The notes under the pieces were generated by a model. It was not told the origin of the DNA and searched no databases. It worked only from the letters and a program-made list of their open reading frames with translations. From contig CM060733.1 of NCBI GenBank assembly GCA_030704615.1, positions 28,644,001-28,708,000 on the forward strand: DNA of 64,000 bases, written 5' to 3'. The number at the start of each line of letters is the position of its first letter. Within the stretch, counting starts at the first letter, position 1. This DNA comes from Takakia lepidozioides (taxonomy: Eukaryota; Plantae; Bryophyta). Shown here in pieces: positions 2,731 through 60,049 of this stretch. Made by a program: the position numbers and the translations under genes.

Positions 2731-3666
2731 GGCATTTGCCTTCTGGACTTGTTTGGCGGGATCAGCACCGGATTGGCTGCTATGCTATAGGCATGTGTAC
2801 GGGTACGGTGTTACTTGTATGTAGAGAGGGATGAGACTGCACGACGCGTCTCACTCCGTCATGTTGCTCAGTTGGTGCAGCAGTACCTTGAGTTGTTACC
2901 GGTGTCTGCAGTTTGTGGATATCAGCAGGCCTTGCCAGCAGACAGTTCGTTGCTGGGGGCGCAGGATTTGGAGCAGGTTGGCTCCATTGATTTAATAGTG
3001 GCAGGTTGGCCCTGCCAAGGGCATTTATCAACCGGGCATGGCAATGGATTGCGAGACTCGAGGTTGGGTCTGTTTTAGGAGATGGTGCAGGTTTTGCGCC
3101 ACTTACAGCTTCATCAAGCTGTATCTCCAGCATACATCTTGGAGAATGTGCCACTGATGGGCGATTCTCAGGCCAGGGTGATGGCCAGTGTGCATCAAGT
3201 CCGGTCGTGGCTTGGTTAGCAGTGTTGCTAGATGCAGCTGCAGTGGGGTCACGGACTCATCGTCCACGGTTATGGTGGACTAACTTGATGTCACATGCAC
3301 TGCTCAAGTGTGCATTTGATGGGGTGCAGCGGCCAGCACACCTCACAGTGGATAGTATTTTGGATACAGGGAGACAGTCTCAGCATGTGAGACACGATGA
3401 CCGTTCGCCTTTGGCAGTGGTCAACAAGGTGGGTCAACCACGAGCAGCACTACCTACACTGCTCAGCTTCCCAGGATCACATGCTTTCCGGGATAGTAGA
3501 CCTGGCCTCATGTGGGATGTTAGTTGCAGCAGTTAGTGGGGCCTAATGCCGATGAGCGAGAGCGGGCTATGGGTTTTTCCACTGGGACCACGGCGGTGCC
3601 TTCTCTTTCTGAGGCATCACGTTTTCAGGTGTTGGGGCAAGCGATGGATCTCAATTGCTTGACCTG
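2731..3666 (+). pseudogene. DNMT3-like C5 cytosine methyltransferase domain within the retrotransposon pol
   Basis: Motifs in canonical order: I LLDLFGGISTG (2740), II YVERD, IV IDLIVAGWPCQG (Cys codon 3013), VI YILENVP (ENV 3142-3150), VIII DAAAVGSRTHRPRLWWTNL, IX ERERAMGFSTG, X RFQVLGQAM. Interrupted by stops at 2788 and 3076 and by frameshifts. Confidence 0.88.
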
Positions 3667-3770
3667 TGTCGTGCGCATATATATCGCTACACAACTACAT
3701 CGCTGTCCAAACCACACCACACATATATGCACAATAAAGTAGTCTGCCACAATGCCACAATCGCCCCCCT
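3660..3770 (-). repeat. Polypurine tract (3764-3770) and 5' ~100 bp of the 3' LTR of copy D
   Basis: Minus strand reads AGCTAGGGGGGCGAT|TGTGGC...TTTGGACAGCGATGTAGTTGTGTAGCGATAT, homologous to 22641-22790 downstream of copy E. Confidence 0.7.
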
Positions 3771-4005
3771 AGCTGGTGGATAGGTCCCTCTACCTCCAGA
3801 TAGCTACAAGATGTAATAGCCACAGCCGTACTAAGTCCTCTATCACTGTCCCTATTGTACTCAAACTCTATAGACCAAGAGGCCGGGTACAAGAGTAGCC
3901 CCATCGTTAGTCGCCGTCTTGCAATCTGTGAACTTGAGCCAGGACTTCGTGTATTCAAGGTCTCATGTAGCTGGGCCTTGCGTTGCTTGTTAGTATCCAC
4001 TCCCA

Positions 4006-4150
4006 CTATCCAATGCATCGTGGACATAACCAATCCCCATCCGGAACCATCTCAAGAGGTGGAGTCAAGCATCCCATATGCCAACCTCTAGAGCATCGAT
4101 CACACACCAGCATGGTGGCTGCCCCTTTAGCAGACCCACACAACATGCAC
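4006..4150 (-). other. PHD finger at the integrase C-terminus
   Basis: CMLCGSAKGAATMLVCDRCSRGWHMGCLTPPLEMVPDGDWLCPRC is a complete C4-H-C3 PHD with the typical PPL..VP.GDW.CP.C tail, in frame with the integrase tail. Confidence 0.92.
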
Positions 4151-7100
4151 CTCAAACCTGCAGATACCACTGCCAGGTTTGGGTCAATCCTGCCATCGAC
4201 ATTCGGAAGGTGACATGGCGCACAATTACGCACATGGTCCTTCCAAGTTATGCCATCCCGACCCTCCAAGACCAAGACGCCTGAGGGCAAGACCTCTCGA
4301 ACCCTCAAAATAACACGTCCTGCAGTCACATCCAGGGTCGTAGGAGCAGTCTGCTGCAGATAGACATAGTCACCAGGGTTGAATATCTGAACCCCAGGAC
4401 GATAGCCCCCACCACGTATGGTAGCATACCTCAACGTATCACGGTGTTGTGCAATGGCAGGGTTCTCGAAAGCCATGGGCATGACTCTCTTGAACAACTC
4501 TGCACGCTGCTCACATGCACGTGCCCACACGTCCGGATCGTCAAGGTTAAGAACTGTAGCAGCTTCTCTGCGAATGGATGTAGGCAAATCCGGCTCTCGG
4601 CCAAAGAGAAGAAAGTATGGTGAGAAGGAGGCAAGTGATGCTTGCATACTGAACCTGTAGCCCATGGCTAACCAGGGTAACTGAAGGTCCCAATCTCCTA
4701 GGTGTCCCTTCTGCAAGCCATACTGCGCAAACCCCTCTTTACTATCTGAACAACTCTCTCTGCCAAGCCATCGGCTTCAGGATGATCCCGAGAAGTGGTG
4801 CGGTGGTCTATCAAGGCCTTGTCACACAAAGCCTGAAACTCCCCCAAGAACTCTCTCTCTTGGTCCGTGAGTACCTCAGCTGGAGCACCGAATCGGCTAA
4901 GCACACAATCCAAGAATGCATACGCAGCTCCCTCACTAGCCTTATCAGGCAATGGAACCAATTCAATCCACTTGGAGAAGTGCTCCACCATCACCAACAC
5001 GTACTTGTTGTGGCGCATGGTCAGTGGCAACGGCCCTGCGAAGTCAAGACTCCACCTGTAGCCCAATCCCATGATCGGAAGAGGGTGCAATTGTGGAGTA
5101 GGGGCGTTGAATGAAGCACGCACCCTATCACACACCATGCACCTAGCCACAAATTGTTGCACCTCTGTGTGCATACCACGCCACCAATACTGCCCCTGCA
5201 GTAGACTATGAGTGCGTCGCACCCCAAAATGCCCCAACTCCTCGTGGGCATGGCGCACTAACCGTGCCCGCTGTGTTGGGTGAGGCACAATCCTCACTCG
5301 ACCATCCTCCCACACTCGGAGCAGGTGTGTCCCCTCCTACTTGAACCTCTTGGCTCGTTGTAGGATCCGATCCCTCTCCTTGGCAATCACAGTGGCTGCC
5401 GTGTCTCCAGTGCGGAGGTAGTCCAACACAACTGAATCCTCATGTATATCTTTGGCGCCACCAGGGTCCTCAGACACTTGATCTACAGTCATCCCTGTTG
5501 TAGGTCCAACCTGGCCTTCCGCTGCCAAGATACACAGAATTGCAGATGCATGCCATCCGGGCACCATCTCCTCGTCCGTCTCACCATGCCACCGAGCTCC
5601 AGTGTCATCTTGTTGGCTCGTGCATGGATTGCGACTCAACCCATCTGCATTGCGATTGACCAAACCCGGTCGATGCACCACCTGAAAGTCATACTCTTGA
5701 AGGATGAGTGCCCACCGTGCAAGCTTCCCCGTAAGCTTGTCTGACTCCATCAACCATTTGAGTGGTTGGTGATCCGTGACAAGGGTGAAGAGATTGCCGT
5801 ATAGATAGCACCTGAAGTGTGCCACGGCCCACACTGCAGCTAAGCATTCTCCCTCATATGAGCTATACTTAGACTCTGCAGCGTTGTTTGAGCGGCTAGC
5901 ATAAGCCACTACGAACTCTCTTCCCTTCATCCACCTGTGTGAGCACCGCTCCAAGCCCCAGCATGCTCCAATCTGTATGCAGCTGAAAAGAACGCCCCCT
6001 GATAGGTCGTCTCAAGATGGGCGCCGAGGTCAACCTCGCCTTGAGCTCTTGAAAAGCTTGTTCTTGCTCATCTTCCCACTGCCACTCCTGGTCCACCTTG
6101 GTCAGCTTGGTTAGAGCCTTTGCAATGGCACTAAATCCCTTAACAAACCGTCTGTAATAATTTGCTAACCCACATGAAAGCTCAAACTCGGCTCACATCC
6201 GTGGGGCGAAAACCTGTGCAATGGACTCTACCTTAGTCTGCTGTACCCCCAATCCTCCAGGATATATCATGTGACCCAGATACTCAATCTGGTTGTGGAA
6301 AAACTTGCACTTGCCCGGATGTAACTTCAATCCGTGCGTCCTTAAGCGCTCAAATACCAGAAGGTGTCTCTCATGCTCCTCCACCAAGTAGTACTAAAGA
6401 TGATGATGTCATCTATGTAGCACCAAGCAAATTCCACCCCTGCTAGAATCCTGTCCATGACTTTTGAAACTCAGCGGGAGCGTTTTTAAGCCCAAATGGT
6501 AAGAACCCCCACTGGTATAGGCAATCCTTCCCGTGCTCATTGATCCCCCAGAATGCCGTCTTTTGCTTATCCGCCTCCTTGATCGGCAACTGTGATATCC
6601 GGATCGTAAATCCAACGTGCTAAAGACCTTGGAATGCCCAATGGCATCAAAGATCTCCTCTGGTGTTGGCATGGCATACCTATCGGACTTGGTCTGACGA
6701 TTTACAGGCCGGTAAGCACCGCACATACGTCTCTCCGTCCAATTGCCATAGACATCCTTCTTAGCTGGCATCACTGTGGCTGAAGCATACTCTCCACCAG
6801 AGAGCTCACCAAACCTGCCTCCCAGAGATCTTGAGTCCTCATCTGAATCAAAGACCTCTCCATGTCACTGTATCTATAGGGTCTCCGAAAGATTGGCGTG
6901 TCAGTGGCCAACTCAATACGGATCTCTTGACCCTTCAGTGCTCCCAAGTCCTTCAAACTGAAGGCAAAGCAATTCCTGTAAGCCCTCAGGAACCGCCGTA
7001 TACGTCGTCTCTCTCCTCCGGTGACAATGGGTCCAATGTCAGGCTCCCAATTGTCCTCCGTAACTGCAACCTTAAGTCCAGTGGGCTTAGAGGTAGAGGA

Positions 7101-7749: not shown

Positions 7750-9940
7750 TAGGAACTAGTGTGTTATGAGTAGGGTGGGGGTGTTTGCTAGAAAAAATCT
7801 AGGCCGTCAATGTCACCGTTTGAAGCAAGGTGAGGATGTATGCGGATGTGCAAAGGCTGGGATAGCTGAAGGAGCAAGGATAGAGTGTGGGTCCAGATTC
7901 ATCCAATAGGGCAGGATATCAAGCACAAGATTACTTATGATTCCTAGTGGATTAGAGCTACAAGAAAGTGGGCACCTTCTTCTCGACATATTTCAGCTTG
8001 TTTTAGCCATCTCACCAGACTTGGCCCTGAGATGAGATGCAATTGAATGCTGTAAGTTAGTCGTTGCTGTTGATAAGTAGGGTGGGGGTGTTTGCTGGAT
8101 GGAACAATTTCTAGGCTGTCAATTGTCAGCTGCTAGCAGGAATGCAAAGATGTATGCTTGTTTTTGCAGTGTCATAGAGAGCTGAAGGAGCATGGATAGA
8201 GTATGTGTCCAGATTCATCCAAGAGGGCCGGATTTCAAGCTCCACGTTACCTATGATTCCATGTGGAAGGATAGATACAAAAAACCTGCATGGATAGATG
8301 GTCGACTGGAAGCCGCAACAGCAGCGGCACAATTGATAAAATCATGCACTTCTAATGAAGGCACCTTCTTCAACACATTTCACCCTGTTTTCCCCCCTTA
8401 TCAAAATTGGCCCTCAATTTTCATGTTGAATTCTGCAAGTTAGCTGTTGAGTGAATGTAGTTGGGAGTGACTTTGACATGATACTGCCAATGTGACAAGG
8501 ATATGCATTGAACTCATTGGTAGAGGGGATATTGGGATAAACTCTTGGCCATTTGCCATCGTCAAAGCTGAAATTGTACTAGTTGTCATTCTGAACACTG
8601 CCCTGGTGGACATGTATGCCAAATGTGGGTGCAGCAAGCCTAATGCGAAGGGAGAGTTCGACAACATGGCTAAATGAGATGTGGTGTTGTGGAGTTCCAT
8701 GATTGCAAGGTATGTGCAACATTGGTGTGAGATTAAGGCTTTGGAAACCTAAGAGCAAATGATGTGGGAAAGGATGAAGCCAGACCATGTCATGTTCATT
8801 TGTGTTTGTAATATGCATATGCGAGCCTAGAAGCAAGGGGCCAAGAGGTTCATGGTGACATCATCAAAGCTGGAATTGTACCTGATGTCATTTTGAACAT
8901 TCCCTTGGTGTACATGTATGTCAAATGCGAGCCTGGTAGCCCTGGAAAGGACGCAACGGTCCACGGTGACATTGTCAAAGCTAGTATTGTACCACTAGAT
9001 GTCTCTAAACACTGCCTTGGTGGACATGTATGTCAAATGCAAGCCTGGCAGCCCTGAAAAATGGTGCAGAGGTCCACGGTAATATCGTCAAAGCTAGTAT
9101 TGTATCTGATGTGATTCTGAATGTTGCCGTAGTGGACATGTATGCCAAGTTTGGGTAAACTACAAGGATACAAATGGCATGCAGTTTGATAATATGGCTG
9201 AATGAGATGTGGTATCAGCCTAGCCATAATTGCACTTAACTAGAGTAGGCAATGAGTGAAGACGGGGTTCGTGGTGACATTGTCCAAGCTAGAATTGAAT
9301 TGATGTCGTTCTGAAATATGCCCTTGTGGTGAGGGCATGCAGAGCATGAGCGCGGGATGGGGTTTTGGAGACCTGAAAGCAAATGATGGGGGAAGGGGTG
9401 AAGCTCGACCACATAATGTTTGTGTGCGTTTGCAGTGCGTGTGCAAGCCTGGCAGCCCTGGAAAGCACATGCAAAGAGGTACATGTTTGCTTCACCAAAG
9501 CTGGAATTGTACCAGATGTGATTCTGAACAATACCCTCGCGGGCATGGATAGCTGAAGGAGCAGGGATAGAATGTGGGCGCAGATTCATCCAAGAGGCCG
9601 GATTTTCAAGCTCCAGATTACCTATGATTCATTATGGAATGATAGCTAGAAGAAACCTGCATGGGTAGATGGTCAACTGGAAGCCGCAGCAGTAGCGGCA
9701 CAATTGATAAAATCAGGCACTGCTAATGAAGGTAGTGGATTGCTAAAGTTCGAGAGATGTCAGTGTATGCATCTTCTGCTCAGGCATTTGAAAGTCTACA
9801 TAGACTTTGCAGCTTTGTGCATTTTTGTAGCAGCACCGGATTAGATTATGGAATGGATCTTTGAACATTATGTCACGTTGTATTTGAATCGATGTTCCAA
9901 TTTCAATGTGCTTTCATGTTTCAATGCTGCTAGAGTTAGG
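7750..9940 (+). pseudogene. Patchwork of PLS-PPR fragments and the repeated YKKPAW module
   Basis: ILNTALVDMYAKCG and other L/S motif remnants at 8560-9540; three copies of the QIHPRGPDFKL...YKKPAW(I/V)DG module; many stops. Confidence 0.75.
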
Positions 9941-10471
9941 CCCATGACTATGGTCATGTACACGACTACCTCCCATCCACAGAGCCTCCGCCACGTGCCA
10001 CTTTCACCCCTCGTGTTCGCCCATACTCGTGCCACGTGCAGTATCTAGAGTGCGCCATGGAAGTCATATGCTCCAGTCATAACAACCACCCCCATCCTGC
10101 ATAATTTGATTCCACGTGTCATGTCCAGTCTTCTCCACGTGTTGTCCTGGGGTTAATCTGCGGAAGTCATATATGCCAGTCGTAAAGACCCTGACGCCTT
10201 CCCTTTGACGTGACACATGGCATATCCCTTCCGTTCCACGTGGAGCTGACATGGATTCGCAGTCATTTACTACGGTCTTATCAATGACTATGATTAGGCG
10301 TCCCCGTTGCCACGTCAACAGTGAGCTCCACGACTGGCATATACGACTCTATGGCGCTTACGACTCATTTATCACAACTAATTGGGTTTATTTGACTGGG
10401 CAGTCATGCAGTCATAAAAGGCTGATACGACTGGAAAATAACAGACATAAAAGCCGGATTTTCTACTAGTG
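9940..10471. mobile_element. Terminus of a CACTA element
   Basis: Ends ...GCCGGATTTTCTACTAGTG (reverse complement CACTAGTAGAAAATCCGGC), preceded by dense CACGTG/AGTCAT/ACGACT subterminal repeats. Confidence 0.75.
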
Positions 10472-12330: not shown

Positions 12331-14139
12331 CCATAAGCAAGAGAGTGTGGAGATAGGGTAGTGGGATGAGAGCATGTTGTGATATGAATTACTTTAGTCT
12401 CTCTTCCTTGTAGTCTTCCACCCTCTCTGTAGGCCAAAACCTTTCTGTAGGTGGAGGCAAGAGTCAGTCCGGGTTTGGGCTGGGGTGTCTTGCAGGAGCG
12501 ACACTGTGGAGTGTTTTTGGTATGGGGGAGTTACTATTTTGATTTTCTTGTGCTTGGATCCCCTCCACACCTGCATGCTTGACTGTCCGCCATGTTAGTT
12601 TTGTGTGGGCGCTTGTTTTCATAAGAGGTTGGTCCGGATTTGATCACCGGTCAATCCTAGAGTGTGCTGTCGATGGTGAGGCTGGGGCGATGACCAGTCA
12701 GACCATCATTGTTCTCTTATGGTGAGGCTAGGTTGATGACCAGCAGACCATAAGAGTGCTTGCGGTGGATGCAGGTGCAGATACAGGTCTACGTTAGAAA
12801 ATTATTTCTGCTTGAACTAGTAGCCGCAACAGGTTCTCTACCCGGTTACCTTGTAGAAAGTGGGGATTAGAGACAGGTTGACAACCGGTTTGAGTGTGAG
12901 TTTTCATCACGGAGGTGCCACCAGTTGCTGAGGAGAGTGCCGGTACGAGCACCAGCGATACTAGTGGGTATACAAGACAAGGTGTGTGGTTTAGGCCACC
13001 TTCACCTTCAGTGTCTTCTGAGGAAGGTTCAGACTCAGAGTTAGGAGGATTCTCGCCGAGGGTGCAAGCCATTTTTGTGCCATTGTTGTGGGATACGATG
13101 GAGGAAATGTATTGAGCTACTAAGGGGCCACGTCGGCACCATCGAGCTTGATGATTTCATACAGGAGTTTGATAGTTGGTGTGATTTGCAGCAGATGCGC
13201 AATCCACAACTGTTTACGCCTTTTATGGCGTGGAAGGGGCTGAGGGGCCACCTATGGATGACTATCATGAGTTTAGGCGGGGAAATGAGGTGGAGATTGA
13301 GGAGTGTCGACAATATTGGTCATCTGACTATGTCTCCATCACTAGAGGCACAAGGGCAGCGGCGACACCAACAACAACACCAACATCCCCAACTGCAAGC
13401 ACTAGTAGTGGGACAAGTAAAGATGGAGCTGGGAAATCCACTCAAGCTCCTGCTGCAGCACCAGCACCCGTGCCTACCTTTAACCCAGTTGTGGAGTTCT
13501 TCGAGGAGTTGAGGAGAAACTACCAGGGGATAAGGACGGATAAATTGCGGAGCTTGCAAGAGTTCCAACGCAAGCCTACTGAGAGTTTGAGGGAGGCTTA
13601 CACGCGCATGAGGCGATTGATAAATGTAACCCAAGGAGTTACGGAAGCTCAAGCAATCCAATTTTGGTATGGGATATTGGACAAGGAGCTGAGGAGAAGG
13701 GTGCGGGATGCAACTCTTCTACAAGTGGACCAGCCCACCTTAGCAAACGTGTTTTTGCTGGTAGAGCGGATAGAGCTCAATATGGTGGAGGAGCGAGTGG
13801 TCATGGTGGGGTTTGGTAAGGAGACACAACGAAGTGGGGCTCCTAGTCAACAACAACCACTACCCCAACGTGTTCAAGGCAACAAGGGGGCTCAGGCGAA
13901 GCCCAGGGAAAGAGATGATCTCAATTGCAGAGGTCACTTCCTTCATTCTCAGGCCAACAACAGTCGGATGTGACATGTTGGGATTGTGGAGGACCCCATG
14001 TTAAGAGAGATTGCCCGAAGAGAGGCAAAGGGCCGGCATAGGCACAGCCTACACAACTACAATGTGGGCATTGTGGCAAGTATGGGCATGAAGAGGCCCA
14101 TTGTTATGACTTGCATCCTGAGCTACGGCCAGGCCAGTT
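12331..14139 (+). mobile_element. DNMT-PHD gypsy copy B: LTR 3' part plus gag (truncated at both ends)
   Basis: gag IELDDFIQEFDSWCD...FQRKPTESLREAYTR; two CCHC knuckles (CWDCGGPHVKRDC ~13977, CGHCGKYGHEEAHC ~14063); similar to 62350-64000. Confidence 0.85.
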
Positions 14140-14278
14140 GGGACATTGACTCCCGAGGTTCGTGAGACAGTCTATAGATTGGGAGGTTATTCCGGTGGAT
14201 TTGTTCCAAAGAGCTGGAAGAAGCAGATTTTCCACGCATGAAAAAAGAGGCGGCGGAGGTAATGTGTATGTTGGAGAT

Positions 14279-17200
14279 CCTGGGGGGTGCACTCTTTATA
14301 AAATGTCTGTATCACGTGCGTTCGCCGCCTAATAAAAAAAACCCCCTATATACGGGTCCTTGGATCATTTATACCCCCTCTGTACATACATTTTGAAGAT
14401 TATAAAACCCCCTCATGTAAATATATAAAAATTTGTAATTTAAAAAAAATACCGCCTTCTGTATGTATATTTTCCTTTCCAATAATTAAAAAATACCCTC
14501 AAATATGTATATGTATGTTTTATATTATATCAAGTTTATTCATTTAAAAATAGAATAAAAATCTAATTAATTAATTAAAAAATCTATTTGCCCTCGATAA
14601 AACTTGTTGTGGAATCTCACTTTGAACAAAAATCAGATGCAGAGAGGAAGGGACATTGTCAATGCCCGATGTGCAAGAGGCCTGAAGAAAGTTTCCATTT
14701 TCTGATATACAGTCCTGGGTATTTTCATCAGAGAGTGAACCTCTTGAAGACCATCAAGACCTAGTCACTGCACCTCTGTTCATCAACTAGGACAGTTTCT
14801 GAACTTGTTCTACAGTTTCAACCTTCGTAAGGTCCAATTATATTCAAAACCTACTATTGAGAATTCCTCTCCAAAAAGAGATTTCGTGCGCCTTTGCTGC
14901 CACTGTTGGAGTCCAACCTGCCTCGCAGTTGATAGAGTTCAATACATTCAATTAGGTGACAAACATTTCATTTCACCAATACTCCCCACAAGAACAAACA
15001 CCATTTTGGAAGTGGTGAAAGCGGTTTGCATCCCGTACAACAATCTCTTGCTTAGCTCTCTTTGAGATGAATTTGGTGGCTGTGTGGCAATCACCACACA
15101 TCTGAAGATTCCTAATGATCCCAAAGACATCCCAGAGGGTGCGTTGATAAGCCAAAAACAATGGCCAACTTCTCATTGTGGTGGCAAAGAGACGATTCTT
15201 TAAGCTCTTCCTCAACATCATGCAATGCAAAGCGGGCTTCACCCCTTCGCACATCATTTGCTCATAGGTCTCCAAAGCCTCCATCCCGCGCCCTTGCTGT
15301 GCATATCCTGCAATCATCGCACTCCACGACATCACATCTCGTTCAGCCATACCGTCGAACACTCCCTTCATACATGTCCACGAGGGTATTGTTCATAATG
15401 ACATTTGATACAATTGCAAATCTGACAATGTCGCCATGGACCTCTTTGCCCTTTTCCAGAGCTGACAGGCTTGCACACGCATTGCAAATGTACACAAACG
15501 TGATGTGGTTGGGCTTCACCCCTTCCCCCATCATTTGATCATAGGTCTCCAAAGTTTCCATACCACGTCCCTGCTGTGCATACCCTACAAGCACCGCACT
15601 CCACGACACCACACCTCGTTCAGCCATGGAAACTCCCTTCGCATCCTTAATGCACCCATATTTGGCATACATGTCCACCAGGGGAGTGTTCATAATGACA
15701 TCTGGTACAATTCCAGCTTTGACAATGTCACCATGGACCTCTTTCCCCTTTTCCAGAGCTCGCAAGCTTGGACACTCATTGCATCCTGCTAACATTATAT
15801 TCCACGTGATCAAAGATCGTTGAGGCATTCTGTTGAACACTTGGTGAGCATCGATGATACTCCCGCACATAACATACATGTTGACAAGGGTGTTGAGTAG
15901 AAAAACATTGTGGACTCCCTCTCTTGATCCTCTTTCAGAAGCTGTGGTCATGGTTGAGGTGCCTGATTTTATCAACTGTGCCGCTGCAGCTGCAGCCTTT
16001 AGTTGACCATCTACCCATGCAGGTTTCTTGTAGCTACTGACCCCCACATGGAATCAAGGTAATCTGGAGCTTGAAGTCTAGCCCTCTTGGATGAATCTGG
16101 ACCCACACTCTATCCATGCTCATTCAGGAAAAAACAGGGAAAAACAGGCTGAAATGTGTTGAAGAAGGTACCTTCATTAGCAGCGCCTTGTTCTATCAAA
16201 TGCACTGCTGCCGCTGCTGTTTCCAGTTGACCATCTACCCACGCAGCTTTCTTGTAGCTATTGATCCGCAGGGAATCAGAAGTAATATTGTGTTTAAAAT
16301 CAATCTCTTGGATGAATGTGTTCCTCGACACCACCTCGTTCAGCCATAGTGTTGAACACTCCCTCCGCATCCTCAATGCTCCCACAAATGGCATACATGT
16401 CCACAAGGGTATTGTTCATAATCACATCCGGTACAATTCCAGCTTTGGTGATGCAACCATGCACCTCTTTGCCCTTTTCCATGGCTGCAAGCTTGCACAC
16501 GCACTGCAAACGCACACAAACATGATGTGGTCGAGCTTCACCCCTTCCCCCATCATCTGCTTTCAGGTCTCCAAAGCCCCATCTCGCGCTCCTGCTCTGC
16601 ACACCCTGCAAGCATCGATTTCCACGACACCACATCTCATTCACCATAGTGTTGAATATTCCTTTGGCATCCTCAATGCTCCCACATTTGGCGTACATGG
16701 CCACCAGAGCAATGTTCAGGATGACATTTGGTACAATTGCAGATTTGATGATGTCACCAGGGATCTCTTTGTCCTTTTCCAGGGCTGCCAGACGCACTGC
16801 AAACGCACACAAACGTTATGTGGGAGGTTTCACCCCTTCCCCCATCATTTGCTCATAGGTCTCCAAAGCCTCCATCCCGTACCCCTGCTGTGCATACCGT
16901 GCAAACATCACAATCCACGACACCACATCTTGTTCAGCCATAGTGTTCAGAATGACAGGTAATCTGACAGGCATTCACCTTTTTGCCTCGGTTGTCCCAC
17001 CATTGACTGGGGTCAGAAAAGTATTCATTCCACAGCTTCTCCTCATCTCTGTTACCTCTTTTAGGATACTTTCCTGTTATCAGTTGGGAGTATCATGTCA
17101 AAGTCACTCCAAACTATCAAAGATTCACTCAACCAGCTAACTTGCAAAATTCAATATGGAGATTTAGGGCCGATTCTGATAAGAGGGAAAAACAGGGTGA

Positions 17201-19294
17201 AATGTGTTGAAGAAGGTGCCTTCATTAGCAACGCTTGATTTTATCAATTGTGCCACTGCTGCTGCAGCTTCCACTTGACCATCTATCCATGCAGGTTTCT
17301 TGTAGGTAATCATAGGTAATCTGGAAAACGGCTCCTGGCAAATCACCTTCATCTTCCCAGACAATCTTCTCAGCTCAGCATGGGATTTCCTTAATTCTGG
17401 GATGCAACTTGTCATCTACAACGAAGGTGAGCACCTTGTTGCAAACCTCAATGCAGCAGCGACCTGGCTCCTTTTCAACCCCTCTGACCTTCATCATTCT
17501 TCTCACCTTTACAGTATCAACCCACCTGCCAGCTACTGCATAGATGTTTGATAGCAACATAAGTCGCGACATCCTGTTCATTCCACTTGAGGATAGATGT
17601 TGCCGCACGTTCAGGTCCACTGCCTCATCCAGTTGTCCCCCACGTCCAAGAAGGTCCACCATGCAGCCAAAGTGCTATACTGTCGGAGTGACACCATGAT
17701 CTTGAATCAAGGAATCGAAGTAGTGTCTTTCTTCATTCAGAAGGCCAGTGTGGATGCATGCAGAGAGAACACAAACTGCTTCAAGCCGTTCTTTTGCATT
17801 CCTTCAAATAGTTGCAGGACCTCCCTATGACAACCATGCTGTGCATATCCTACGATCATTGCATTCCACGATACCACATCTCATTTAGCCATATTGTCGA
17901 ACACTCCCTTTGTATCCTCCATGCACCCACATTTGGCATACATGTCCACCGGGGCAGTGTTCAGGATCACTTTTGGTACAATTCCAGCTCTGACGATGTC
18001 GGCATGCACCTCTTCGCCCTTTTCCAGGGCTGCCAGGCTTGCACACGCACTGCAAACGCACACAAACGTGATGTGGTCGGGCTTCAACCCGTCACACATC
18101 ATTTGCTCATAGGTCTCCAAAGCCTCCATCCCACGTCCCTGCTGTGCATACCCTGCAAGCACCGCATTCCACGACACCACACCTCGTTCAGCCATAGTGT
18201 CAAACACTCCCTTTGACTTTGTAAATGAAGATAGGTCCCTTTGATGGGGCATGGATTGTAGTGGTTTCGCAGTCCTACTTGTTGTTTCCTCGTCGCCATG
18301 TCCATCTTCTACTTTGGGGCGGGGTCAGGGCTGGCAAGGTTTTAGCAACCAGTGTCATGACTCTCTCTCTCTTCCTCTTTGTTCTGCCCAATCTGGGTGC
18401 AGGATCTATGGCCACAAGGCTATCATGAGTACTTTCTCCCTCACACACACCTCTCCCTGTTCCGCCCAAACTGGGCATGGACTAGGTAAATAGCCACAAT
18501 GCAATGACAAACGTCGTATGAGTACATTTCGCTCTCTCTACTCTTGGCAATAGACTGAAATTGAAATGCAGTCGGGGAGCGTACCTTTGAACAAACAAAC
18601 AGATGCAGAGAGGAAAGGTAGCCTATCAATGCCCGACGTGCGGGAAGCCTGAAGACTAAACATTTTCTGATAGACCCTCTTCACTTACATCAAGAACAGA
18701 GTCCTTGCACGGCTGTTCGCCAAGATGCACCCACATTTTGCAAACATATCCACCAGGGTATTGTTCAGAATGACAGCTGGTACAATTCCAGCTCTAAAGA
18801 TGTTGCCATGGACCTCTTTCCCCTTTTCCAGAGCTGCCAGGGCAGTGTTTAGAATGACATTTGGTACAATTCCAGCTTTGACGCTATCCCCATGCACCTC
18901 TTTGCCCTTCTCTAGGGCTGCCAGGCTTGCACGACGCCACATCTTGTTCAGCCATCTTCGCGGAAGGGAAGTCGAACGCGGGAGAGGAGATGAGAAGAGG
19001 AGAGGGAAAAGAAAAAGCCGTCGGAGGGAAGGGGAGAAAGATCGCGGGAAGACAGAAAAAAAAAACCAAACAAAAGGATGAACCCGCGACTTAATCCCGC
19101 GGTGCATCGCAGCCTAATCGTCGTTCTTACCACTACACTACCCCTGAAAACTCAACAACCCCCTCATGTAATATTATATTTAAGGTGTTTTAAAACCCCC
19201 TCTGTATGTATAATGTTGTACATGGGGGGTTTAAAATACCCCCTCCTGTGCACGCACATGGCTGGTACATTTAATGAGGAGTGCACCCCCCAGG
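14279..19294. mobile_element. Non-autonomous Pack-type TIR transposon (5016 bp) carrying PPR-DYW fragments
   Basis: Perfect 16-bp TIRs CCTGGGGGGTGCACTC / GAGTGCACCCCCCAGG; 8-bp TSD TTGGAGAT at 14271-14278 and 19295-19302; removing the element restores TnpD MCMLEMHIPPSFFD; ACCCCCTC(A)TGTA subterminal motifs at both ends; no transposase inside. Confidence 0.9.
14973..18960 (-). pseudogene. Fragmented PLS-class PPR / E-E+ / DYW RNA-editing factor sequences
   Basis: Repeated P-L-S units ([26 protein letters not shown]; ACASLAALEKGKEVHG; NTALVDMYAKCG); E/PG box LLSNIYAVAGRW..GVEKEPGRCCIEV (~17440-17560); DYW domain [16 protein letters not shown] / [29 protein letters not shown] (14973-15230). Confidence 0.9.
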
Positions 19295-21684
19295 TTGGAG
19301 ATGCACATTCCTCCCTCCTTCTTTGACATCCACACTTGATAGTGCACTTAGTGGAAGAGGCTTCGATTACCGGCCCCGTTCATTATCGGTGGATGTACTT
19401 CCTTGAGCATTATATGAAGACTTTGAAAAGATTTGTAAGGCAAATGGCGCACCCGGAGGGTAGCATGGCGGAGGGGTATACGTTGCAAGAAGCTATGTTC
19501 TATTGCACGGAGTACATGGCAAGGGTGGATGAGGAAGCCCCTCGGATGTGGAAGGAGGATGCACGAACCAATGACATCGTTTTGCCCAAAAAATCGAAGA
19601 GGGTAAAATTGCCGACCTTGGTGATTGAGCAAGCGCATGACTTCATACTGAAGAACACCCCATCCATACATGAGTGGGAGACAAGATACAATAATCTGGT
19701 TCAGCAACGAGAGGATGAGACACTTGCATGGAGGCGGAACCATCCAAGGCCGGTTACTAGACGCCCACGACGAGGAGCGGGCCGCCGGAATGTTTCTTCA
19801 CAAAATTTGCCCATGGAATTGCAGCCTCTAAGTTCATTCCAACAGTGGCTTCGGACTTCAGTTTATGACGCCGTTGCTCAAGGAGAGGTGGTTTCAGATT
19901 TGGTGCAAGACATTGCAAGGAGCCCTTCTCAATTTGCGACCTCATACACGGCGGTTTGGGTTCATGGTCGTCATTTCCGCATTCGTGCTCTTGACATGAA
20001 GCGCAAAACAACCTTTGATTCTGGCTTGTGTGCCACATATTGGCAAGACTCCATGTGGGGCAAGGGAGATACACGACCTGCTATGAGCAAACTTGAGTAC
20101 ATTGGAGAGCTTGAGAACGTACTCCAACTTCAGTATACAAGGTAGCGGCCTCTTCTCTTCAAGGAAAGATGGTTCCAGCCACATCTGTGGGGCCCTTCGC
20201 AACACTAGTGCAAAATGATTGTGGTTTCATGCGCATCAATGCAGATAGGCTCAACCCTACTCATCGTCCCTCCGATGAGCTTTTTTCACGACTTTCAGAC
20301 ATGGAGCAAGTTTTCTTTTCCGATGACAAAACAAGAGGGGGGGATTGGAAGGTGGTTGTGCATGCTCAGCCAAGAGAAAGACGTATCTATCATGGTCACG
20401 GATCTCCATGGGGTGAGGCAATTGCGGTGGACGGAGAGACTGGTTATAATGATGCTGATGATGGAGGTTGGGTAGAGGGGTAGAAGAGGATGATGATGCC
20501 CCGGACAATGCATCCTGGACCCTATATGATGAAGCTCTAGAAGATACGGATGTTGGAGAAGGAGACAAAGACACGGCCATTGACAACGAGGTGGAGGATG
20601 ATTTGGAGGTGCCTTTTGAGGGCCGGGCCATTTATGACGATGACTCCGATGACCAAGAAGACTTGTTGCTTGATGAGGATGAAGAAGCTCCGGATGATGA
20701 TGTTCAAGTTGATTAGACACAAAATCAAAGCTACATAACAATTCTCGCACCGAATTGGACCCATCTCTTTGATTGATTGTACATGTACATGCATATTGTA
20801 CTTTATTTCTATGATTGATCAAATATGGCTGTGGCTGATAGTCTTTTAAGAAAGAAGGCAGAAGCAATGAATATGTTGGAGCGACACATACAGATGTGGT
20901 ATCAAAAGAATTATCAAAATGAATGTCACAATCTACAAGAAGGTCCACAACAACAAGCTAAACCATTAAGAAAAACAAACACCCTACCCCAGTACCATAT
21001 GAAAAAAAAAAAAAAAACTAAGAACCCCAAAGGCCCTAAACTTAAACCTAGAAAGCCCTGCCGTCGATGCTTGCAACCCCCACGCGTCGGCACCTGCGAC
21101 GCGGTTTTTAGGATTTATGAGGCCGGGGGTTGCAAACGGCGACGGCCAACCGTCGCCAACTGCGACCTGTTTTTTTGAATGGATTTATGAGGCCTGGGGT
21201 CGCAAACGGCAATGGCCAGCCGTCGCAAACTAACCTGTTTTTTTTGTTTTGCAAGAATAGGGCAGCCGGGCAATTTGCGATGCCCCGCCATCGCAGGGGC
21301 CTTTTGCCCTTCATGTCACCATGCGACGGCCTGACGTTGCAAGAAAGGGCTGCGATGAAAGAAATGGCAAGAAAGGGTTTTTTTTTTCGGCGTGCAACGA
21401 CCGGTCATCGCTAGAAAGGGCTGCCTTCTGCTCTTCGCTTGGGGGGGGGGGGGGGGGGGGCACTTGGGCGTCGCACGGAAGGGCTGTCTTTTGCATTTTA
21501 TCCGCACGTGCGACGGTCAGGCGTCGCCATCTGGCCCCGGCGCTAGGTGGCGACCCGTGGGATTTGGCTGCGACGGCCCGACGTCGCAAATACGCTCCGC
21601 GGGGTTGGCGTCGCATGCTCAGCGCCGCGCGGGGCGTGGGGCCACAGCTGACATCGCAAACCCCCCCCCCCATTTGCTGTAGTG

Positions 21685-23283: not shown

Positions 23284-23818
23284 CTTTATTACATTAATTT
23301 TTAAAGTAAAACTCTAGATTTTTTGTGACATTTAAAAAAAAAAAATGGGTGGAAGGATATTGCTCTACAGTATTTTTTAAGTAATTTAAAAAAAATTACC
23401 TCAAAAGAATAAACTGCACCCTATATTTGTTCTCACGTGGTTTTGAAAATACGGGGAGTGACCCCCCCAAGGCAGATAGTAAGTGCCTAAACCATTCAAT
23501 TTTGATGTTTTCATGCAGTGAAAATCTGCTGCCACAGTAGTAGTTCAGTTTACTCGATGTAGTCATTTCATTGACTGGAGGCAGTGAGCATACAATCACT
23601 GTGTAGCCACTACAGGTTTATGAAGAGGACTTAGGATTATTATGTCATTCTTTATCAAGGGTTTAATATATATATATATATATATATATACTGGTTTTCA
23701 CTATGTTTTGTTGTGGTCAACAGAGAATGAGCATATAAAACATGCACGTGATGCATTCACAATTTCATGAAGACGAAACCAATCCACACGTGCACTCCCC
23801 ATTGAGTATCCCTCGACA

Positions 23819-28735: not shown

Positions 28736-29665
28736 GTGATTGTAGAACAACAAACACGACAAGCCTTAGAACGAGAGATACAACTTGCTAAAGAAGCAAA
28801 GTTCTACGAAAAAGAGAGAGCTCGAGAAAGAGAGTGTGATAGACGGAGAAGACGTGAACGTTTGACAGAAAAAAGAAGAGAACGAGAGAAGGGGAGAGCA
28901 AGAGAAAGAAGGAAAAGAAGAGACCGAGAAAGAGAGCGCCAAAGAGATAAGAACCGGGAAAGAGAGGAAGAGACCGAATTTGCTCAAGAGAGAGAAAGAG
29001 GAAGGGAAGTTGATAGAGAAAATGAGAGAGAACGAGAAAGAGAGAGGTCTAGAGAGAGAGAAGAAGATAGACTCAAAGAAGAAGGAAGACAGAAAGAAAG
29101 AGATCAAAACAAAGCAAACGATCTAGAGCGAGCACAACTTAGGAAACGACAACGAGATAGGGAATACCGTAGAGAAAAAAGTAGAGAGCGTCTCAGACTA
29201 AATGAGAGAAAAAAAGAGCTCGAAGAGAAGAAGCATTTCAATGAAGAGAGACAACAAGATAGAGAGAAGAACGAAGAAACATATAAAGAACGAGAGAAAG
29301 AGAGGGGCGATGAAAGAGAAGATCTAAGAAAGAGAGATTATGAGAAATATTTGGAAGGTCGAAGAGAAAGATTGAGATCCAAACAACACGAGGAAGATAA
29401 CTTAAGTCAAAGAAAATTAGATGTTGCTAGGAAAAAAGAGATAGAGCGAGCGAAAAAAAGAGAGCATGAAAGAGAAAAGTCAGGTTGGAGGGCTGCCGCA
29501 AGAGAGGCCGAAGAAAAAATGCAAAATCAAAAAAATGCTGGACAAGGGTGGGATGATTTCTGTGAGAAAAAGAGAGACGTAGAAAAAGAAATGGACAGAG
29601 ACAAAACAAATCGGGAGGCATGGCAAGCAGTCTTGTCTAGAATGTTTTTCCGATGGAAGATGTAG
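28736..29665 (+). CDS. Arg/Glu-rich low-complexity predicted coiled-coil protein (start uncertain, may have upstream exons)
   Basis: 309 open codons in AT-rich surroundings with a non-repetitive C-terminus (GWDDFCE..AWQAVLSRMFFRWKM); oriented divergently from the Dpy-30 gene; possible upstream exon near 28240-28290. Confidence 0.5.
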   Translation: MIVEQQTRQALEREIQLAKEAKFYEKERARERECDRRRRRERLTEKRREREKGRARERRKRRDRERERQRDKNREREEETEFAQERERGREVDRENERERERERSREREEDRLKEEGRQKERDQNKANDLERAQLRKRQRDREYRREKSRERLRLNERKKELEEKKHFNEERQQDREKNEETYKEREKERGDEREDLRKRDYEKYLEGRRERLRSKQHEEDNLSQRKLDVARKKEIERAKKREHEREKSGWRAAAREAEEKMQNQKNAGQGWDDFCEKKRDVEKEMDRDKTNREAWQAVLSRMFFRWKM

Positions 29666-30747: not shown

Positions 30748-33700
30748 ATGGCAACCGGGATGGTGATGGACATGAAAGAGTCTCTGGTTTCTCTTCTGGA
30801 TGCGCCTCTGGCTGACGCAGTTGTCTTTGGCGTTCACATTGACGGTACTCTTTCTCTCTCTCTCTGTGGGCACTTTCTCCGTTTCTCTCTCGGTCATTTG
30901 AGTCCTTGGGCCTCCCGCGGACGTAATGACATAATCAATTTTTCGGTAGAGCTTGTATGGGTTTAGTGGAATCGCTTGGTCTCTCTCCTCATCCCCCCCC
31001 TTACTTTTCGCAATCTGTGCTCTGGCCAGCACGGGACAGCAGGTCCAATGAGAGTCACAGCTGTTCTGTCCTTTAGAACATTGACTGTTTTGTAGTTTTC
31101 CCTCCTCGTGACAGGGTCCTAGTTTTTTCGGTGGTTGGGCTTGCTTGTAATGTGGGCTATATTGATCATCTTTTACCAGACCTATTATTCCAGAGTCGTT
31201 AAAACAACACTACATTTTTATGTATTGCAAGAGATTTCATTCTAGTTTGGAGAATGTGTCATTTCGAGCACAATCGGTGCAATCTTTGTTTTTTTTGAGC
31301 GGGAAGAGGGGCGGGGGGTTGGGGTGTGATTCGCTCTTTGACTCTTCACGAGGATTCGGCTAGGATGACAACAGATCTACAACGTCCAACCCAAAATCTA
31401 GGGGTTTACTAAATGCGAACATTTTTAAGACACTTATCGTTAGAGCTTCCTTTTGACACATGTAAAGAAAGGATTGCTGCAAACTCTCCACAATTTGGTC
31501 AGTGAGTGACTCCTTCTCTGCTATTCACAAAGTGTGACACAGAAAATCTAGATATCCTGTTACAGCTCACCTATGAAACCTGATTGGTATTACATTGGGG
31601 TTGCATTTCATGGAGGAGCATCACGCACACTAATCAGAGATGGTTGGGTTGGCAGGGCATTTGTTTGTGGAGACCCTGCTGGTCGTGGTGATTGCAGTCC
31701 TGCTATTACAGAAAAGTTACCAACCTGAGAAGCGCCCACTCACACAGCATGTTCTCTCTCTCTCAATCTCTCTCTTCCTCTCCCTTTCTCCGCAAGATTG
31801 TATGCAAGCAGTAGTAAAATCAGCCCTTCATACCTGGTTTGCTGCCTACCTGGTTGGTAGAAACTGCATGGCTGGGCATGTGATCGTTGTTGCCAAATCA
31901 TGGCCAACTTTGGAGGGAAAAGGTGAATGGAGTTCCGTCCCTCCCATCCCAAACCTCCCCTTTTACAGTGCGACTTGGCTTTGCAACTGCAGCCACCTGT
32001 CTCATCTGTGGAAGGCAGAGGATCATAGTATCAGTGCTCATATCAACTAGACAGCAGCAATGCTGAAGTCGACATTTTTATTCCCAATGAGATGTCTATA
32101 CCAGCCCCTACTTCAATACTTGGTTCCATGCAATTCCTATCTGAGTTTCCATAACCTGGTGCACAGCCAGCTCCTGGAGGGGTCACATCCTGTGGAGAGA
32201 ATGCCCTAACGGTCATAGCCAAGATTTCCGGGGAACAGACAATGAAGACATTCTCTTCTCTTCTCCATCCAGATTGGGTCCAGGTTCTACGGGATGCCAT
32301 GTCCAATGGACACACCTTTTCTCTCTCTCCTGCCTGCTCCCATGGCACTCTTTACTTGGACTGGTCCTCGCACAACTTGCTCCTTTGCAACCTCTACTTG
32401 TGGGAGGAGAAAGCTTGACTATATGTAAAGTCAGTTGGTTTGAAAGTCTTAAAGGAGGGAATGGTACGGTGGGGAGCAGGAAATAAACCAGTTGTGTGAT
32501 GAATGGACCCCGGAGCCATTGCACCCTCCCATCACAAGTGAGATGGAAACTGTAACCCCTATTCTTGAAAGGTACGTGTTTGCAGCTTAAAGTAGTGGTA
32601 TTGTGGTAGCTTGTTATAGCCTTATGGTAAGTGCACTTTCTAAGTGGTACTTGTCCGATTCCAGTCATTGATTATGTTGGAGTGATGACACATGGTCTGG
32701 CCAACGCTGGGTAGATGATTCTCTTTCCAAAGGGCAGAGTATTTCAGGTCTGTATTGGGAGAACGATCTGGAAACAGGAGTGGGCAGAGTTCAAGTTAAT
32801 TTTGGCAGTTTTTCCTGCAATTCTCTATGTAACAGACAATTAAAATGCAGTGCAGCGGGCCCACACACAGTGGTCGATGGTAAGGATGTTATCAATTTGA
32901 CCTCAGCAAATTACTTGGGCTTGATTGGAAACACCAAAATCAAGGTCCGTCCAGTATTTGATTTGTTTTGTGGTTTCAATTCAAGATTTTGGTGACTTTG
33001 CCAGTGCATGTTTGTTTTTCTGGCTTTAATTGCAGGCACTGCTATTACGCTCTTACTGGGATTAGTTGACTAGCATCACCAGATAGCCACTAGGCTTGGG
33101 GGCCTTGTCTATATGAGACCCATGGAGATTGCACTAATGTATGCAGTGCTCAATTAGAACCCAAACTTGTGCCTTTGCAGCCCAGGATCCTGCAGTATAT
33201 ATCCCCTCCTGTTCGGTAACGATCTCAGTATGAAATTGTTGGAGCACGGTGACAACACTGGACATGCCAATAATCGGGATGTTGTTCATTCATCTGGCTG
33301 TCAGTTACATGAGAGATAGAGAGAAAACTCATTGCATTGTCAAACTGAACTTCAGCATTTTTGCCCACAGGCAGGATTTTACAAAATGAGGTGCTTGTTG
33401 AAACTTCCAAACCTCTCTCTTATAATATTCTGAGCCCAAGTACCTCTATCAACCCACAATCAACCTTTATTCAACCGGCATGTAAGATTTGATCATTTTG
33501 GGTTGGCTGCTGCAGGAAGCATGCATTGCTGCTCTAGAGAAGTATGGAGTTGGGGCATGTGGCCCACGGGGATTCTATGGCACCATTGGTAAGGTGCTTC
33601 TATTTGGGCACTCCTTCACTAGGTTTTCTTGTGCGTGGGCAGGTAGGTGTGAAAGGAAAGGAAAGGATAGGCAAGGAAACAAACTTTATAAAAAAGAGAT

Positions 33701-36581
33701 GTACACTCTAGACTGTGTTTTAGAGCTGAAACAGGAGGGAAATCTCAACTTGGGGGGTTATATGAGGAGAGGATTGCCGCCCCCAATGACTTGGTAGGGG
33801 CTGTGTTTTGGATGAGGCACAGAACCAGCTTATGCTTTGGCATTTACTATTTGGTTGCTAGGTGGCTTTGTTGTCTATGAACGCTATTTGCCGTTTCTGG
33901 GCTTGTGTACCCCCTATCCACACTAGGTGAGGATGTTATGTGGCTTCTCCCTCTTCTGTCATGCCTGTCTGGCTCATTTTTATCAGGAGGTGGTTAGCCT
34001 GGCCCTGCACATTCAATGGTTTTGGCTATCTGATCGCAACTTTCTGTGTGCTAAATCATGATGTTTCTTGGCATGCCAAGGTTGTGGTACAGGTTGTTCA
34101 TTCGGAGAGAGATGCAGGCCGTTGTATTCTAGATGCATACTAGCACACCTACGGTTTTCCCTCTTATTTCTGAAAATATGAGTTTGCCCTGGGGAGCAGA
34201 TGTACACATGGACTTGGAAGCGAAGATAGCCCAATTTATGGGAACACCAGATGCCATTTTGTACTCGTATGGGTTGGCTACTGTGTCCAGTGTGATTCCT
34301 GCCTTCTGCAAGCGAGGCGATCTTATTCTTGCGTGAGCACTTCTGTCCTCCGATACTCACTATTTACTTTTAAAGTCCTATTTCTGTCCTTCTACACTGT
34401 CTTTGGGTCTAGCTTCTGTCGGCATTTGTCTTCAGCATTTATGTTTATGCTTGAAAATACTTATGTAACATCAAAATGCAGGGACGAAGGTGTGAGTTGG
34501 GGCATACAGAATGGGCTATTTTTATCTAGGAGTACGGTGAGGTATTTCAAGCACAATGACATGGCATCCCTAGAAGCACTCTTGGAGGATGTGAGACAGG
34601 AGGACTGGCGCAAAAAGAGGGCCCTAAACCGCCGTTTCATTGTTGTTGAAGCCATCTACCAGGTGTCACTACCACTGTCACTTTCAATGTTACTTGTTCA
34701 TGCATCTACGGTAGTGTATTAGACAAGCAACTCATTAAGGGAAGCTCTACATGAATGATGACAGGAAATGGTTGTTCACATTGTGGTCCAATAAGCGTTT
34801 CTGTGGTAACACAATGGGTGTTTTGGGACAGAATTCAGGTCAGATGGCACCCCTGGATGAAATTGTTCGGCTGAAGGAGAAGTACCTTTTCAGAGTCTTG
34901 GTGGATGAAAGCAACTCAATTGGCGTGCTTGGCAGCAGTGGCCGTGGCCTTTCTGAGCACTTCAACATTCCTGTAGGTTCTGGACTCGCTTGTTAATATA
35001 TCAAGCATTGATTGGCAAGGGGTTGAGCTTTTGCAGTCATTGATCGGTTGAGGCAGCGGGGAACTTTTTTAAGGTTGTTCTAGCATCGCTGCTTTACTCT
35101 GTAACAGACAATAAAAGAGCATAGATAGCACAGCTTTAAAAAAAACAAACTGTAGGGAGTCACAGAAGTAGTCTTGTTGGGAATTTTGCACTGAAGTTTA
35201 TGATGGAAAGGCACATGCAGGTAGAGAAGGTGGACATAATCACAGCAGTCATGGGCCATTCTCTGGCATCAGTTGGTGGCTTCTGTACAGGCAGTGCCAA
35301 AGTTGTGGATCATCAGGTGTGTAACAACATCTTTGCGCACATGTGATGCGATGCTTCTCTGCCTGATGCTCTCTTCACAATTGTTGGAAAGACTCTCGCT
35401 GCTCTTCTTTGAAAGGCTTGAGAAATTGGTGAAAGTTGTAACCCTCCTTGGGTCTGAATTCATGGTTATTACTTAAATCAATGCTATCCATGGTAAAGAT
35501 GTCCTTCTCTGGGCATAGGGTATCTCTTTACTGACGAGTTTAGATTGTTTGTGCAGCGTCTTAGTGGAGCAGGTTACTGTTTTTCAGCAGCATTACCGCC
35601 ATTCTTAGCAAGTGCTTCCATTGCTGCAGTGGAGCTGTTAGAGGATAACCCTGCGCTGCTAACCAAACTCCAACAGAACATCGCCATTTTTCGCACAAGT
35701 GGGTGTTTTTCTATCCTCCCTTTGTCAAAAGGATAGATTTAAAACTCATCCGCACACCCATGGCCTGATCTCTCTCTCTCTGACAGTTATCAAGGTCACA
35801 CCACTGGAGTGAGCCCCTCACAAAGGTAGTGTCTATTCCCTATGTTTCCATCCAAACTGGGCGCGGGGTCCATGGCCACAAGGCTATGGCAAACTTCTTA
35901 TCAGTACATTCTCTGTGTCTCCCTTTCTCTTACTTGGGGCTACGGTAAACAACGTTGTATGAGTACATTTTCTCTTGCTTGCTCACTTGATCATTATGAG
36001 CACAGGTCTTGCAACAATCCCAGGAGTGGTGGTTGGAGGGCATGCACTGTCTCCTCTCATATTTTTGCATTTGCAAAAATCGGGCTCCTTTGGAGAAGAT
36101 TCGGTGGTTCTGCAGCGGATTGTTGATGAAGTAAGCTTTCTTCCTTCATCAATATTTCCAAACCTCTGATTGCATTTCATGGTTCTAAAAGTGTTCACTA
36201 GTCACAAATCTACCAAGGACTATTGTGTGGGCCTCATTCATGTTATGGGTAATGGAATGTTCTCATTGGCAATTTCTTGTTAGCTTGCTACCATGCCCGA
36301 ATCACAACAGCACTGTCGCTCCAACAAACTGCAGGAAGCTGATAATCATGCTGTACATGTTGTTGAACTGGGTACTGTTGAGTGTGATAGAATTTTGGAG
36401 GTGGGGGAAACAGATGCTGGGGGAGGGAGTGCTATTGAGTGTAAGCAAGCGCTCGATACTTGACAAGTGCAAGCTGGGGGCAGGCATCCGCATTACTGTG
36501 TCAGCCGGTCATACAGAAGCTGAGCTCCTCTCAGTCGCTTCCACATTGAGGAATGCTGTACGATCTGTTCTCAGTTCATGA
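30748..36581 (+). CDS. LCB1: Serine palmitoyltransferase subunit 1 (long-chain base biosynthesis 1), multi-exon
   Basis: Exons in order encode [117 protein letters not shown]. Confidence 0.95.
35770..35975 (+). mobile_element. Two stacked 3'-end fragments of the CT-associated LINE in an LCB1 intron (another at ~36660-36715)
   Basis: AAACTGGGCGCGGGGTC.ATGGCCACAAGGCTA.GGCAAAC...TATGAGTACATT matches 43943-44000; preceded by a (CT)n tract. Confidence 0.8.
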
Positions 36582-49540: not shown

Positions 49541-49564
49541 CCCAAGGCGGCATTTCAGCAGATT

Positions 49565-57152: not shown

Positions 57153-57306
57153 TCACCCCCTCCTCTAGCGTCGAGTTCCTCGAGGAGCAGTAAAATCTTG
57201 GACTTGCTTAGAGTTGGAGAACCTCCCTCCTTAATATGTATCAGATACACTGAATGTGGAGTGTTCACCTTGAAGCTAACTTGGCTGACATCATCGTTGT
57301 GACATC

Positions 57307-60040: not shown

Positions 60041-60049
60041 GGTTTTAGT

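Follow-up and report, generated by a model that had tools for sequence, protein, structure and literature searches.

The genome of the moss Takakia lepidozioides contains, within the 64-kb stretch of contig CM060733.1 analysed here (the window, in which all coordinates are given), a 5016-bp unit (14279–19294) that has inserted into a CACTA transposase gene and left an 8-bp target-site duplication (TSD). By sequence comparison, about two thirds of this unit come from one host family, the PDF-PLS-PPR-E-DYW genes, which code for RNA-editing factors built of pentatricopeptide repeats (PPR) and a DYW deaminase domain. We interpret it, with a probability of about 0.8, as a non-autonomous cut-and-paste element of the Pack-TYPE kind, bounded by terminal inverted repeats (TIRs), whose cargo stems mostly from a single family and has been amplified together with the ends; such an element would work like a Ds or Pack-MULE element.

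The boundaries are set by a 16-mer, CCTGGGGGGTGCACTC, present in perfect form at 14279–14294 (+) and inverted at 19279–19294 (−), with inverted termini that continue past the perfect 16 bp to a length of 43 nt at 77% identity, and by exact 8-bp copies of TTGGAGAT on both flanks (14271–14278 and 19295–19302, both +). No other non-microsatellite pair in the 64 kb combines a perfect inverted repeat of at least 10 nt with an 8-bp flanking direct repeat. Removal of the element and one TSD copy yields an empty site, ...EAAEVMCMLEMHIPPSFFDI..., with a single frame through the junction, and the restored frame reads MCMLEMHIPPSFFDI, the part of the DUF4218 domain that is conserved among CACTA elements. 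The piece downstream of the insertion matches positions 41–107 of the DUF4218 profile (Pfam, E 7.5e-23), and the remaining host CACTA, comprising DUF4218 and the right end CACTACAG, occupies 19303–21684 (+; sequence and Pfam match). The TnpD coding piece left of the insertion (14178–14270, +; 33 aa) is assigned by frame continuity at the empty site and has no Pfam match when searched alone. A 9-bp TSD could also be read, requiring unequal ends and giving an identical empty site. Because TIRs, TSD, end-restricted motifs and a frame-restoring empty site coincide, the insertion represents a true transposition, and the original prediction of perfect 16-bp TIRs, an exact 8-bp TSD, shared subterminal motifs and a reconstructable empty site within CACTA TnpD is borne out on all four points.

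The subterminal motif (12–13 nt, ACCCCCTCTGTA-like), whose pattern was derived from these same element ends, occurs three times on the left and four times on the right within the 340-bp ends and is absent from the 4.3-kb interior, with eight occurrences across the whole window; its seven copies in the element are thus restricted to the ends. The left subterminal region (14295–14619), AT-rich and located at the 3′ end relative to the cargo, holds three clear and two degenerate ACCCCCTCTGTA-type motifs, and the right one (18956–19278, −) holds the other four, followed by a pyrimidine-rich tract resembling a 5′ untranslated region (UTR). This tract runs up to the ATG with which the first PPR piece opens, which makes transcription from the element plausible, and the right end may be its promoter end. 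Mapping and Pfam detected no transposase coding in the interior, where the largest unassigned gap is 173 nt. No further copy of the TIR is present in the window, and the extended TIR gave zero matches in a JGI metagenome scan. A TIR-like 17-mer with three mismatches at 23456–23472 (−) scores no better than background; it is followed by CACGTG at a spacing similar to that of the element ends, and neither a partner end nor a TSD accompanies it in the window.

Both ends of the element start with CC, whereas hAT elements usually end in CA or TA, and for this reason it is not filed as hAT. It otherwise resembles non-autonomous, Ds-like hAT elements in its 8-bp TSD, its short TIR (5–27 bp in hAT; PMC10741241) and the repetition of short subterminal motifs at both ends, and no hAT transposase with these ends was found in the window or the JGI metagenome scan. 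Mutator-like elements (MULEs) with short TIRs share a TSD within the MULE range of 7–12 bp (PMC10741241), into which the possible 9-bp reading also falls, together with G-rich ends and cargo capture, but their TIRs are usually long, as opposed to a perfect repeat of just 16 bp here (43 bp at 77% identity). Zisupton likewise generates 8-bp TSDs (PMC12730594). As rough odds, we place hAT a little below an even chance, MULE clearly lower and any other superfamily slightly lower still, which agrees with the earlier decision to leave the superfamily unassigned, with hAT suggested and the ends judged atypical. The MULE of the window (49410–52050), considered as a partner, shares PDF/PPR sequence with the element and has no match to its ends in the window.

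The cargo was mapped with the window's own clean copies, with reference spans for PPR, E and DYW that we defined on the translation and cross-checked against Pfam and tblastn. PPR pieces total 1970 nt, E/PG pieces 409 nt and DYW pieces 260 nt, i.e., 2639 nt or 53% of the element, and the inclusion of PDF-motif pieces (689 nt) raises this to 3.3 kb; the rest comprises pieces resembling a long interspersed nuclear element (LINE; 452 nt), termini (~680 nt) and unassigned sequence (~550 nt). Both values fall short of the roughly 4 of 5 kb of PPR, E and DYW sequence given in the original prediction, whose claim of co-orientation is correct: all PPR, E, DYW and PDF pieces lie on the minus strand, and the LINE-like scraps, which match a window element at 42958–44700 (zf-RVT as candidate), lie on the opposite, plus strand. 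The PDF exons with their intron, the LINE scraps and the PPR/PDF mosaics elsewhere in the window, described below, went unnoticed in that prediction.

From left to right, the cargo starts with a LINE-like C-terminal fragment of an open reading frame (ORF; zinc-knuckle area, with LINE as candidate identity; 14620–14799, +) that matches window positions 43568–43749 and 44245–44412 at 69–70%, followed by sequence past the DYW stop that is probably the donor gene 3′ UTR (14800–14972, −; covered by contigs of the sequencing runs X5 and X6 discussed below), the C-terminal part of the DYW deaminase (14973–15232, −), PLS-PPR pieces with internal deletions, N-terminal PPR first (15233–15907, −; mapping and Pfam), two copies of the second PDF-motif exon with a linker to the PPR N-terminus (15908–16320, −; sequence comparison), and two frameshifted PLS triplets (16321–16946, −). 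Next come a part of the second PDF exon, an intron of ~190 nt recognized by sequence inspection, and the first PDF exon (EKLWNEYFSDPSQWWDNR) up to its GT donor (16980–17325, −); the last S motif, E1/E2 with a deletion, the PG box and the N-terminal part of the DYW domain, broken after LSGKMK (17345–17774, −; Pfam E_motif 8e-12); the cleanest PLS triplet and last P/S repeat, with one stop of the CGA-to-TGA type (17775–18215, −); three 3′ fragments of LINE-like sequence that run antisense to the PPR pieces (18368–18675, +); and three short PPR pieces, the first of which opens at the ATG right after the pyrimidine-rich tract (18725–18955, −).

The PDF motif is the single-stranded DNA-binding motif of plant OSB proteins (PMC6963530), and the PDF exon of the cargo is identical at 14 of 18 positions to the N-terminus of the best PPR match, a Diphasiastrum protein (P0021) with a PDF motif followed by PLS repeats. 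As intact genes of Diphasiastrum combine PDF and PLS parts, the PDF, PPR, E and DYW pieces can share one source gene architecture. PLS-DYW editors of this type, with an N-terminal OSB-type PDF motif (KAJ7517631.1, KAJ7568880.1), have the PDF motif, PLS triplets (at most 58% identity), E, PG box and DYW ligands in common with the cargo, but in the latter the order is scrambled, several frameshifts and stops occur, and a 2.1-kb stretch separates the two parts of the DYW domain. Protein searches with the longer cargo pieces gave best matches of 58–65%, with no same-species PPR among them. The ~190-nt intron between the PDF exons is also present at two other places in the window, and its retention implies that the sequence was captured as DNA, not cDNA. 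The seven PPR cores of the element are only 73–86% alike and are therefore not recent tandem copies.

Rather than encoding a working editor, this copy constitutes a pseudogene reservoir. The HxE and CxxC zinc ligands and the EYW stop reported in the original prediction are indeed present on the minus strand (HNE at 15180–15172, CGDC at 15098–15087, EYW-stop at 14984–14973, with the PG box at 17473), but HNE and CGDC lie in different frames, Pfam PF14432 being matched in both with a frameshift between them, and the domain is split: its N-terminal part ends at 17347, and only after 2.1 kb of PDF/PPR pieces does the C-terminal part follow, from 15232. The two parts match residues 1–83 and 68–166 of P0001, respectively, and are nearly contiguous in intact proteins. 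No continuous PLS-E1-E2-DYW frame with HxE and CxxC was found on the cargo strand, where the longest stop-free stretch is 236 codons, and this copy has no targeting sequence. With its deaminase split and frameshifted and no continuous PPR-E-DYW frame, it encodes no working editor, and the earlier suggestion that such an element could generate new editing specificities is not supported for this copy.

Evidence for further copies comes from contigs of public sequencing runs, aligned at 85% likeness, for which summed depth does not equal copy number and is inflated by overlapping contigs. In the DNA run X1, summed depth is 45,000–79,000 at sites within the left and right terminal regions, 3,100–4,600 at the cargo-specific 14921–14963 after the DYW stop, ~1e6 over the PPR repeats, and 60–98 for contigs specific to paralogues. 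The independent sample sequenced in run X5 yielded only 3181 records, compared with 89367 in X1, from which we infer low coverage; mainly repeated DNA would assemble in such a run. Its single contigs cross the LINE/3′ UTR/DYW junctions (14608–15035, 10 substitutions in 429) as well as those between PPR and LINE pieces (18186–18752), and the contigs spanning cargo-specific junctions are 96.5–97.5% identical to this copy. This suggests that hundreds of elements carry these ends and that tens, diverged by ~2.5–3.5%, carry this cargo end, and it argues, if indirectly, against PPR sequence having entered this copy alone, the outcome that the original prediction had named as counting against it. The link between ends and cargo is indirect, given this limit of summed depth and the fact that none of the contigs listed joins the two.

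Several observations weigh against the proposed reading. Among the contigs listed, none joins a terminal region to cargo with at least 31 letters on each side, no second full copy of the element is readable in these runs, and no partner transposase was found in the searches described above. The termini are ~10x deeper than this cargo end in X1, so that the interiors of most members of the family probably differ from this one, whether or not they contain PPR sequence. Finally, the repair mechanism proposed below rests on junction anatomy, with microhomologies seen by eye at only a few joints.

The excess of termini over cargo would also fit a nested insertion, in which a short TIR element (~0.5–0.7 kb) came first and a separately mobile, Helitron-like PPR mosaic later, the cargo never having been moved by the TIR transposase. 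PPR/PDF mosaics are indeed present outside these TIRs in the window, and position 19114 shows a weak hairpin with CTAA-T after it. However, these mosaics have different junctions, and the hairpin (−11.2 kcal/mol, 5-bp stem) ranks no higher than about the top 5% among the 452 sites of this kind in the window, in a scan for Helitron1 ends, and would render the cargo antisense to the Helitron. Moreover, an X5 contig (19056–19255) crosses the 19114 site, and no interior-skipping joint occurs among the matches listed (15 of ~930). We consider nested insertion highly improbable.

Runs X6 and X7, whose nature as RNA is a guess, contain relatives of the cargo stretches (14819–15035 at 94%; 15059–15234 with three substitutions and two gaps), most of which have an extra base at 15151, precisely where the DYW frame of this copy breaks. 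Such relatives, together with PPR pieces that all point away from the 5′ UTR-like tract, the first opening at an ATG, would be expected if the element were a gene-building vehicle, the end of which provides a promoter and some members of which, with intact or spliceable PPR-DYW frames, yield new editors, the present copy having decayed. Against this stand the lack of a usable frame and of a targeting sequence in this copy, its split deaminase, the very low depth of the element ends in X6 and X7, and the guessed RNA status of these runs, whose contigs may derive from donor genes; we regard this alternative as very unlikely.

PPR carriage is not special to this TIR family, since two further PPR/PDF mosaics in the window adjoin a CACTA end and a MULE transposase: one (7760–9740) is delimited at 10471 by a right end of the CACTA type, and the other (48750–49460) continues in frame into a MULE transposase gene. 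The repeat at 16640–16430 of the element is 89–93% identical to 9310–9545 in the first mosaic, above any pair within the element (73–86%), and these two alone among the seven P-motif copies of the window, with five lacking both, carry a 1-bp deletion together with a second variant. These shared differences point to an already broken template that was copied twice, or to the derivation of one repeat from the other. In this genome, PPR pieces seem to pass in their broken state between different transposon types.

With respect to the mosaics themselves, the first (7760–10471, +) shows ACGACT subterminal repeats at its CACTA-type end and is a probable truncated Pack-CACTA. The second belongs to a nearly complete MULE transposase gene (48750–52050, +) with a FAR1-like N-terminus, D-D-E motifs and a SWIM finger, which is interrupted by a few stops and one frameshift. 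The first ORF of this gene opens with ~50 codons of a PDF-PPR gene N-terminus, with PDF exons upstream, and may be a host-gene/transposase chimera. No MULE 5′ end was found in the window, and a word search with the N-terminal ORF gave no homologue. Downstream of the gene, a G+C-skewed array of ~37-bp GATCCCCT-type repeats (53100–53830) is possibly the subterminal region of the MULE.

The occurrence of PDF/PPR pieces in three transposon contexts within 64 kb, the summed depth of ~1e6 in PPR bins in DNA and the capture of a LINE scrap as well could be explained by abundance alone: PPR DNA, being common, would be caught by any capturing transposon without homology bias, and would give at most junk or small-RNA noise. 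This explanation fits the Pack-TYPE anatomy equally and departs from our reading just in the cause of the single-themed cargo. Random capture should nevertheless give mixed sources and strands, whereas ~10 separate pieces of the element come from one family in one orientation, with the LINE pieces in the opposite one; we regard passive abundance as rather unlikely.

In the origin that we favour for this Pack-TYPE element, transposase from a partner would move it in trans via the TIRs and subterminal motifs, and its interior would have been assembled stepwise by double-strand-break repair with template switching. The first uptake may have been the PPR-E-DYW-3′ UTR end of a gene, with 2.1 kb of PDF/PPR pieces inserted later into the DYW domain, followed by more pieces. 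Once PPR sequence was aboard, abundant paralogues and pseudo-copies would have offered the easiest homologous templates, leading to a single-themed, co-oriented cargo, and the patchwork would then have been amplified together with its ends, perhaps to tens of copies. The tandem-insertion model of Pack-CACTA, in which DNA between neighbouring copies is captured (PMC6379663), does not alone explain filler inside a domain. A broader scenario, in which several DNA-transposon superfamilies share a circulating PDF-PPR-DYW pool, swap modules by homology-guided repair and occasionally release intact, expressed chimeras, appears unlikely.

Pack-TYPE elements are documented for hAT, PIF, CACTA, Mariner and MULE (Gisby and Catoni 2022, PMC8903248). 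Like Pack-MULE, Pack-CACTA and Pack-hAT (PMC8903248; Catoni et al. 2019, PMC6379663), the Takakia element has TIRs and a TSD, no transposase, and multiple fragments captured as DNA, including an intron, but it differs in that two thirds of it come from one gene family, in being seemingly multicopy with its cargo, and in its moss host; the whole words 'moss' and 'PPR' are absent from the text of the survey PMC8903248. A literature search, with most subscription journals outside its coverage, retrieved no paper on a Pack-TYPE element filled with editing-factor sequence, and a search for Helitron-captured PPR genes retrieved none. The expansion of PPR genes, of which Takakia lepidozioides has 2,016, has been credited to retroposition (PMC13386178), in a study where Takakia is the weakest fit for intron loss (51.98% vs 74.78–93.21%) and whose mechanisms section covers retroposition features only. 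That model shares with our results the dispersed, transposon-linked PPR copies in early-diverging plants, but the copy described here is DNA-level, keeps its intron and is bounded by TIRs and a TSD.

The remainder of the window holds both genes and other transposon remains. A retrotransposon gag region (12355–13822) lies directly upstream of the truncated CACTA host and is 84% alike to a second copy 50 kb away (62358–63881). The LINE-like 3′ fragment at 42958–44700 (+), internally duplicated in tandem over 670 bp and provided with a repeated tail, shorter copies of which occur at ~35810–35975, is inside an intron of an intact-looking POL/PLL-type PP2C gene (39223–45460, +). The best named matches of this PP2C are in mosses, and a quick tree places it as a deep branch within the moss clade (clade support 99), outside the Sphagnum and Physcomitrium/Ceratodon groups. 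Further features are an intact-looking gene identified by eye as serine palmitoyltransferase LCB1-like (30750–36580, +), a low-complexity, R/E/K-rich ORF of 309 codons with no Pfam match in an AT-rich block at 25–30 kb (28736–29665, +), and Ty3/gypsy-like pol remnants (reverse transcriptase, RNase H and integrase by eye) in a context resembling long terminal repeats (55400–60050, −).

How thousands of site-specific RNA editors arose in some seed-free plants is an open question. The element demonstrates a DNA-level route, in which introns are kept and modules shuffled, and its 16-bp end and 8-bp TSD provide a searchable tag by which this route can be measured. Some of the PPR genes counted in this genome may be pseudogenes carried by transposons and, if the copies make small RNAs, transposon silencing would be set against a needed gene family. 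DNA transposons spread PPR-DYW sequence, while their role in making working editors is unproven; if a shared pool does release chimeras, these transposons would be a real engine of editor expansion and recoding beside retroposition.

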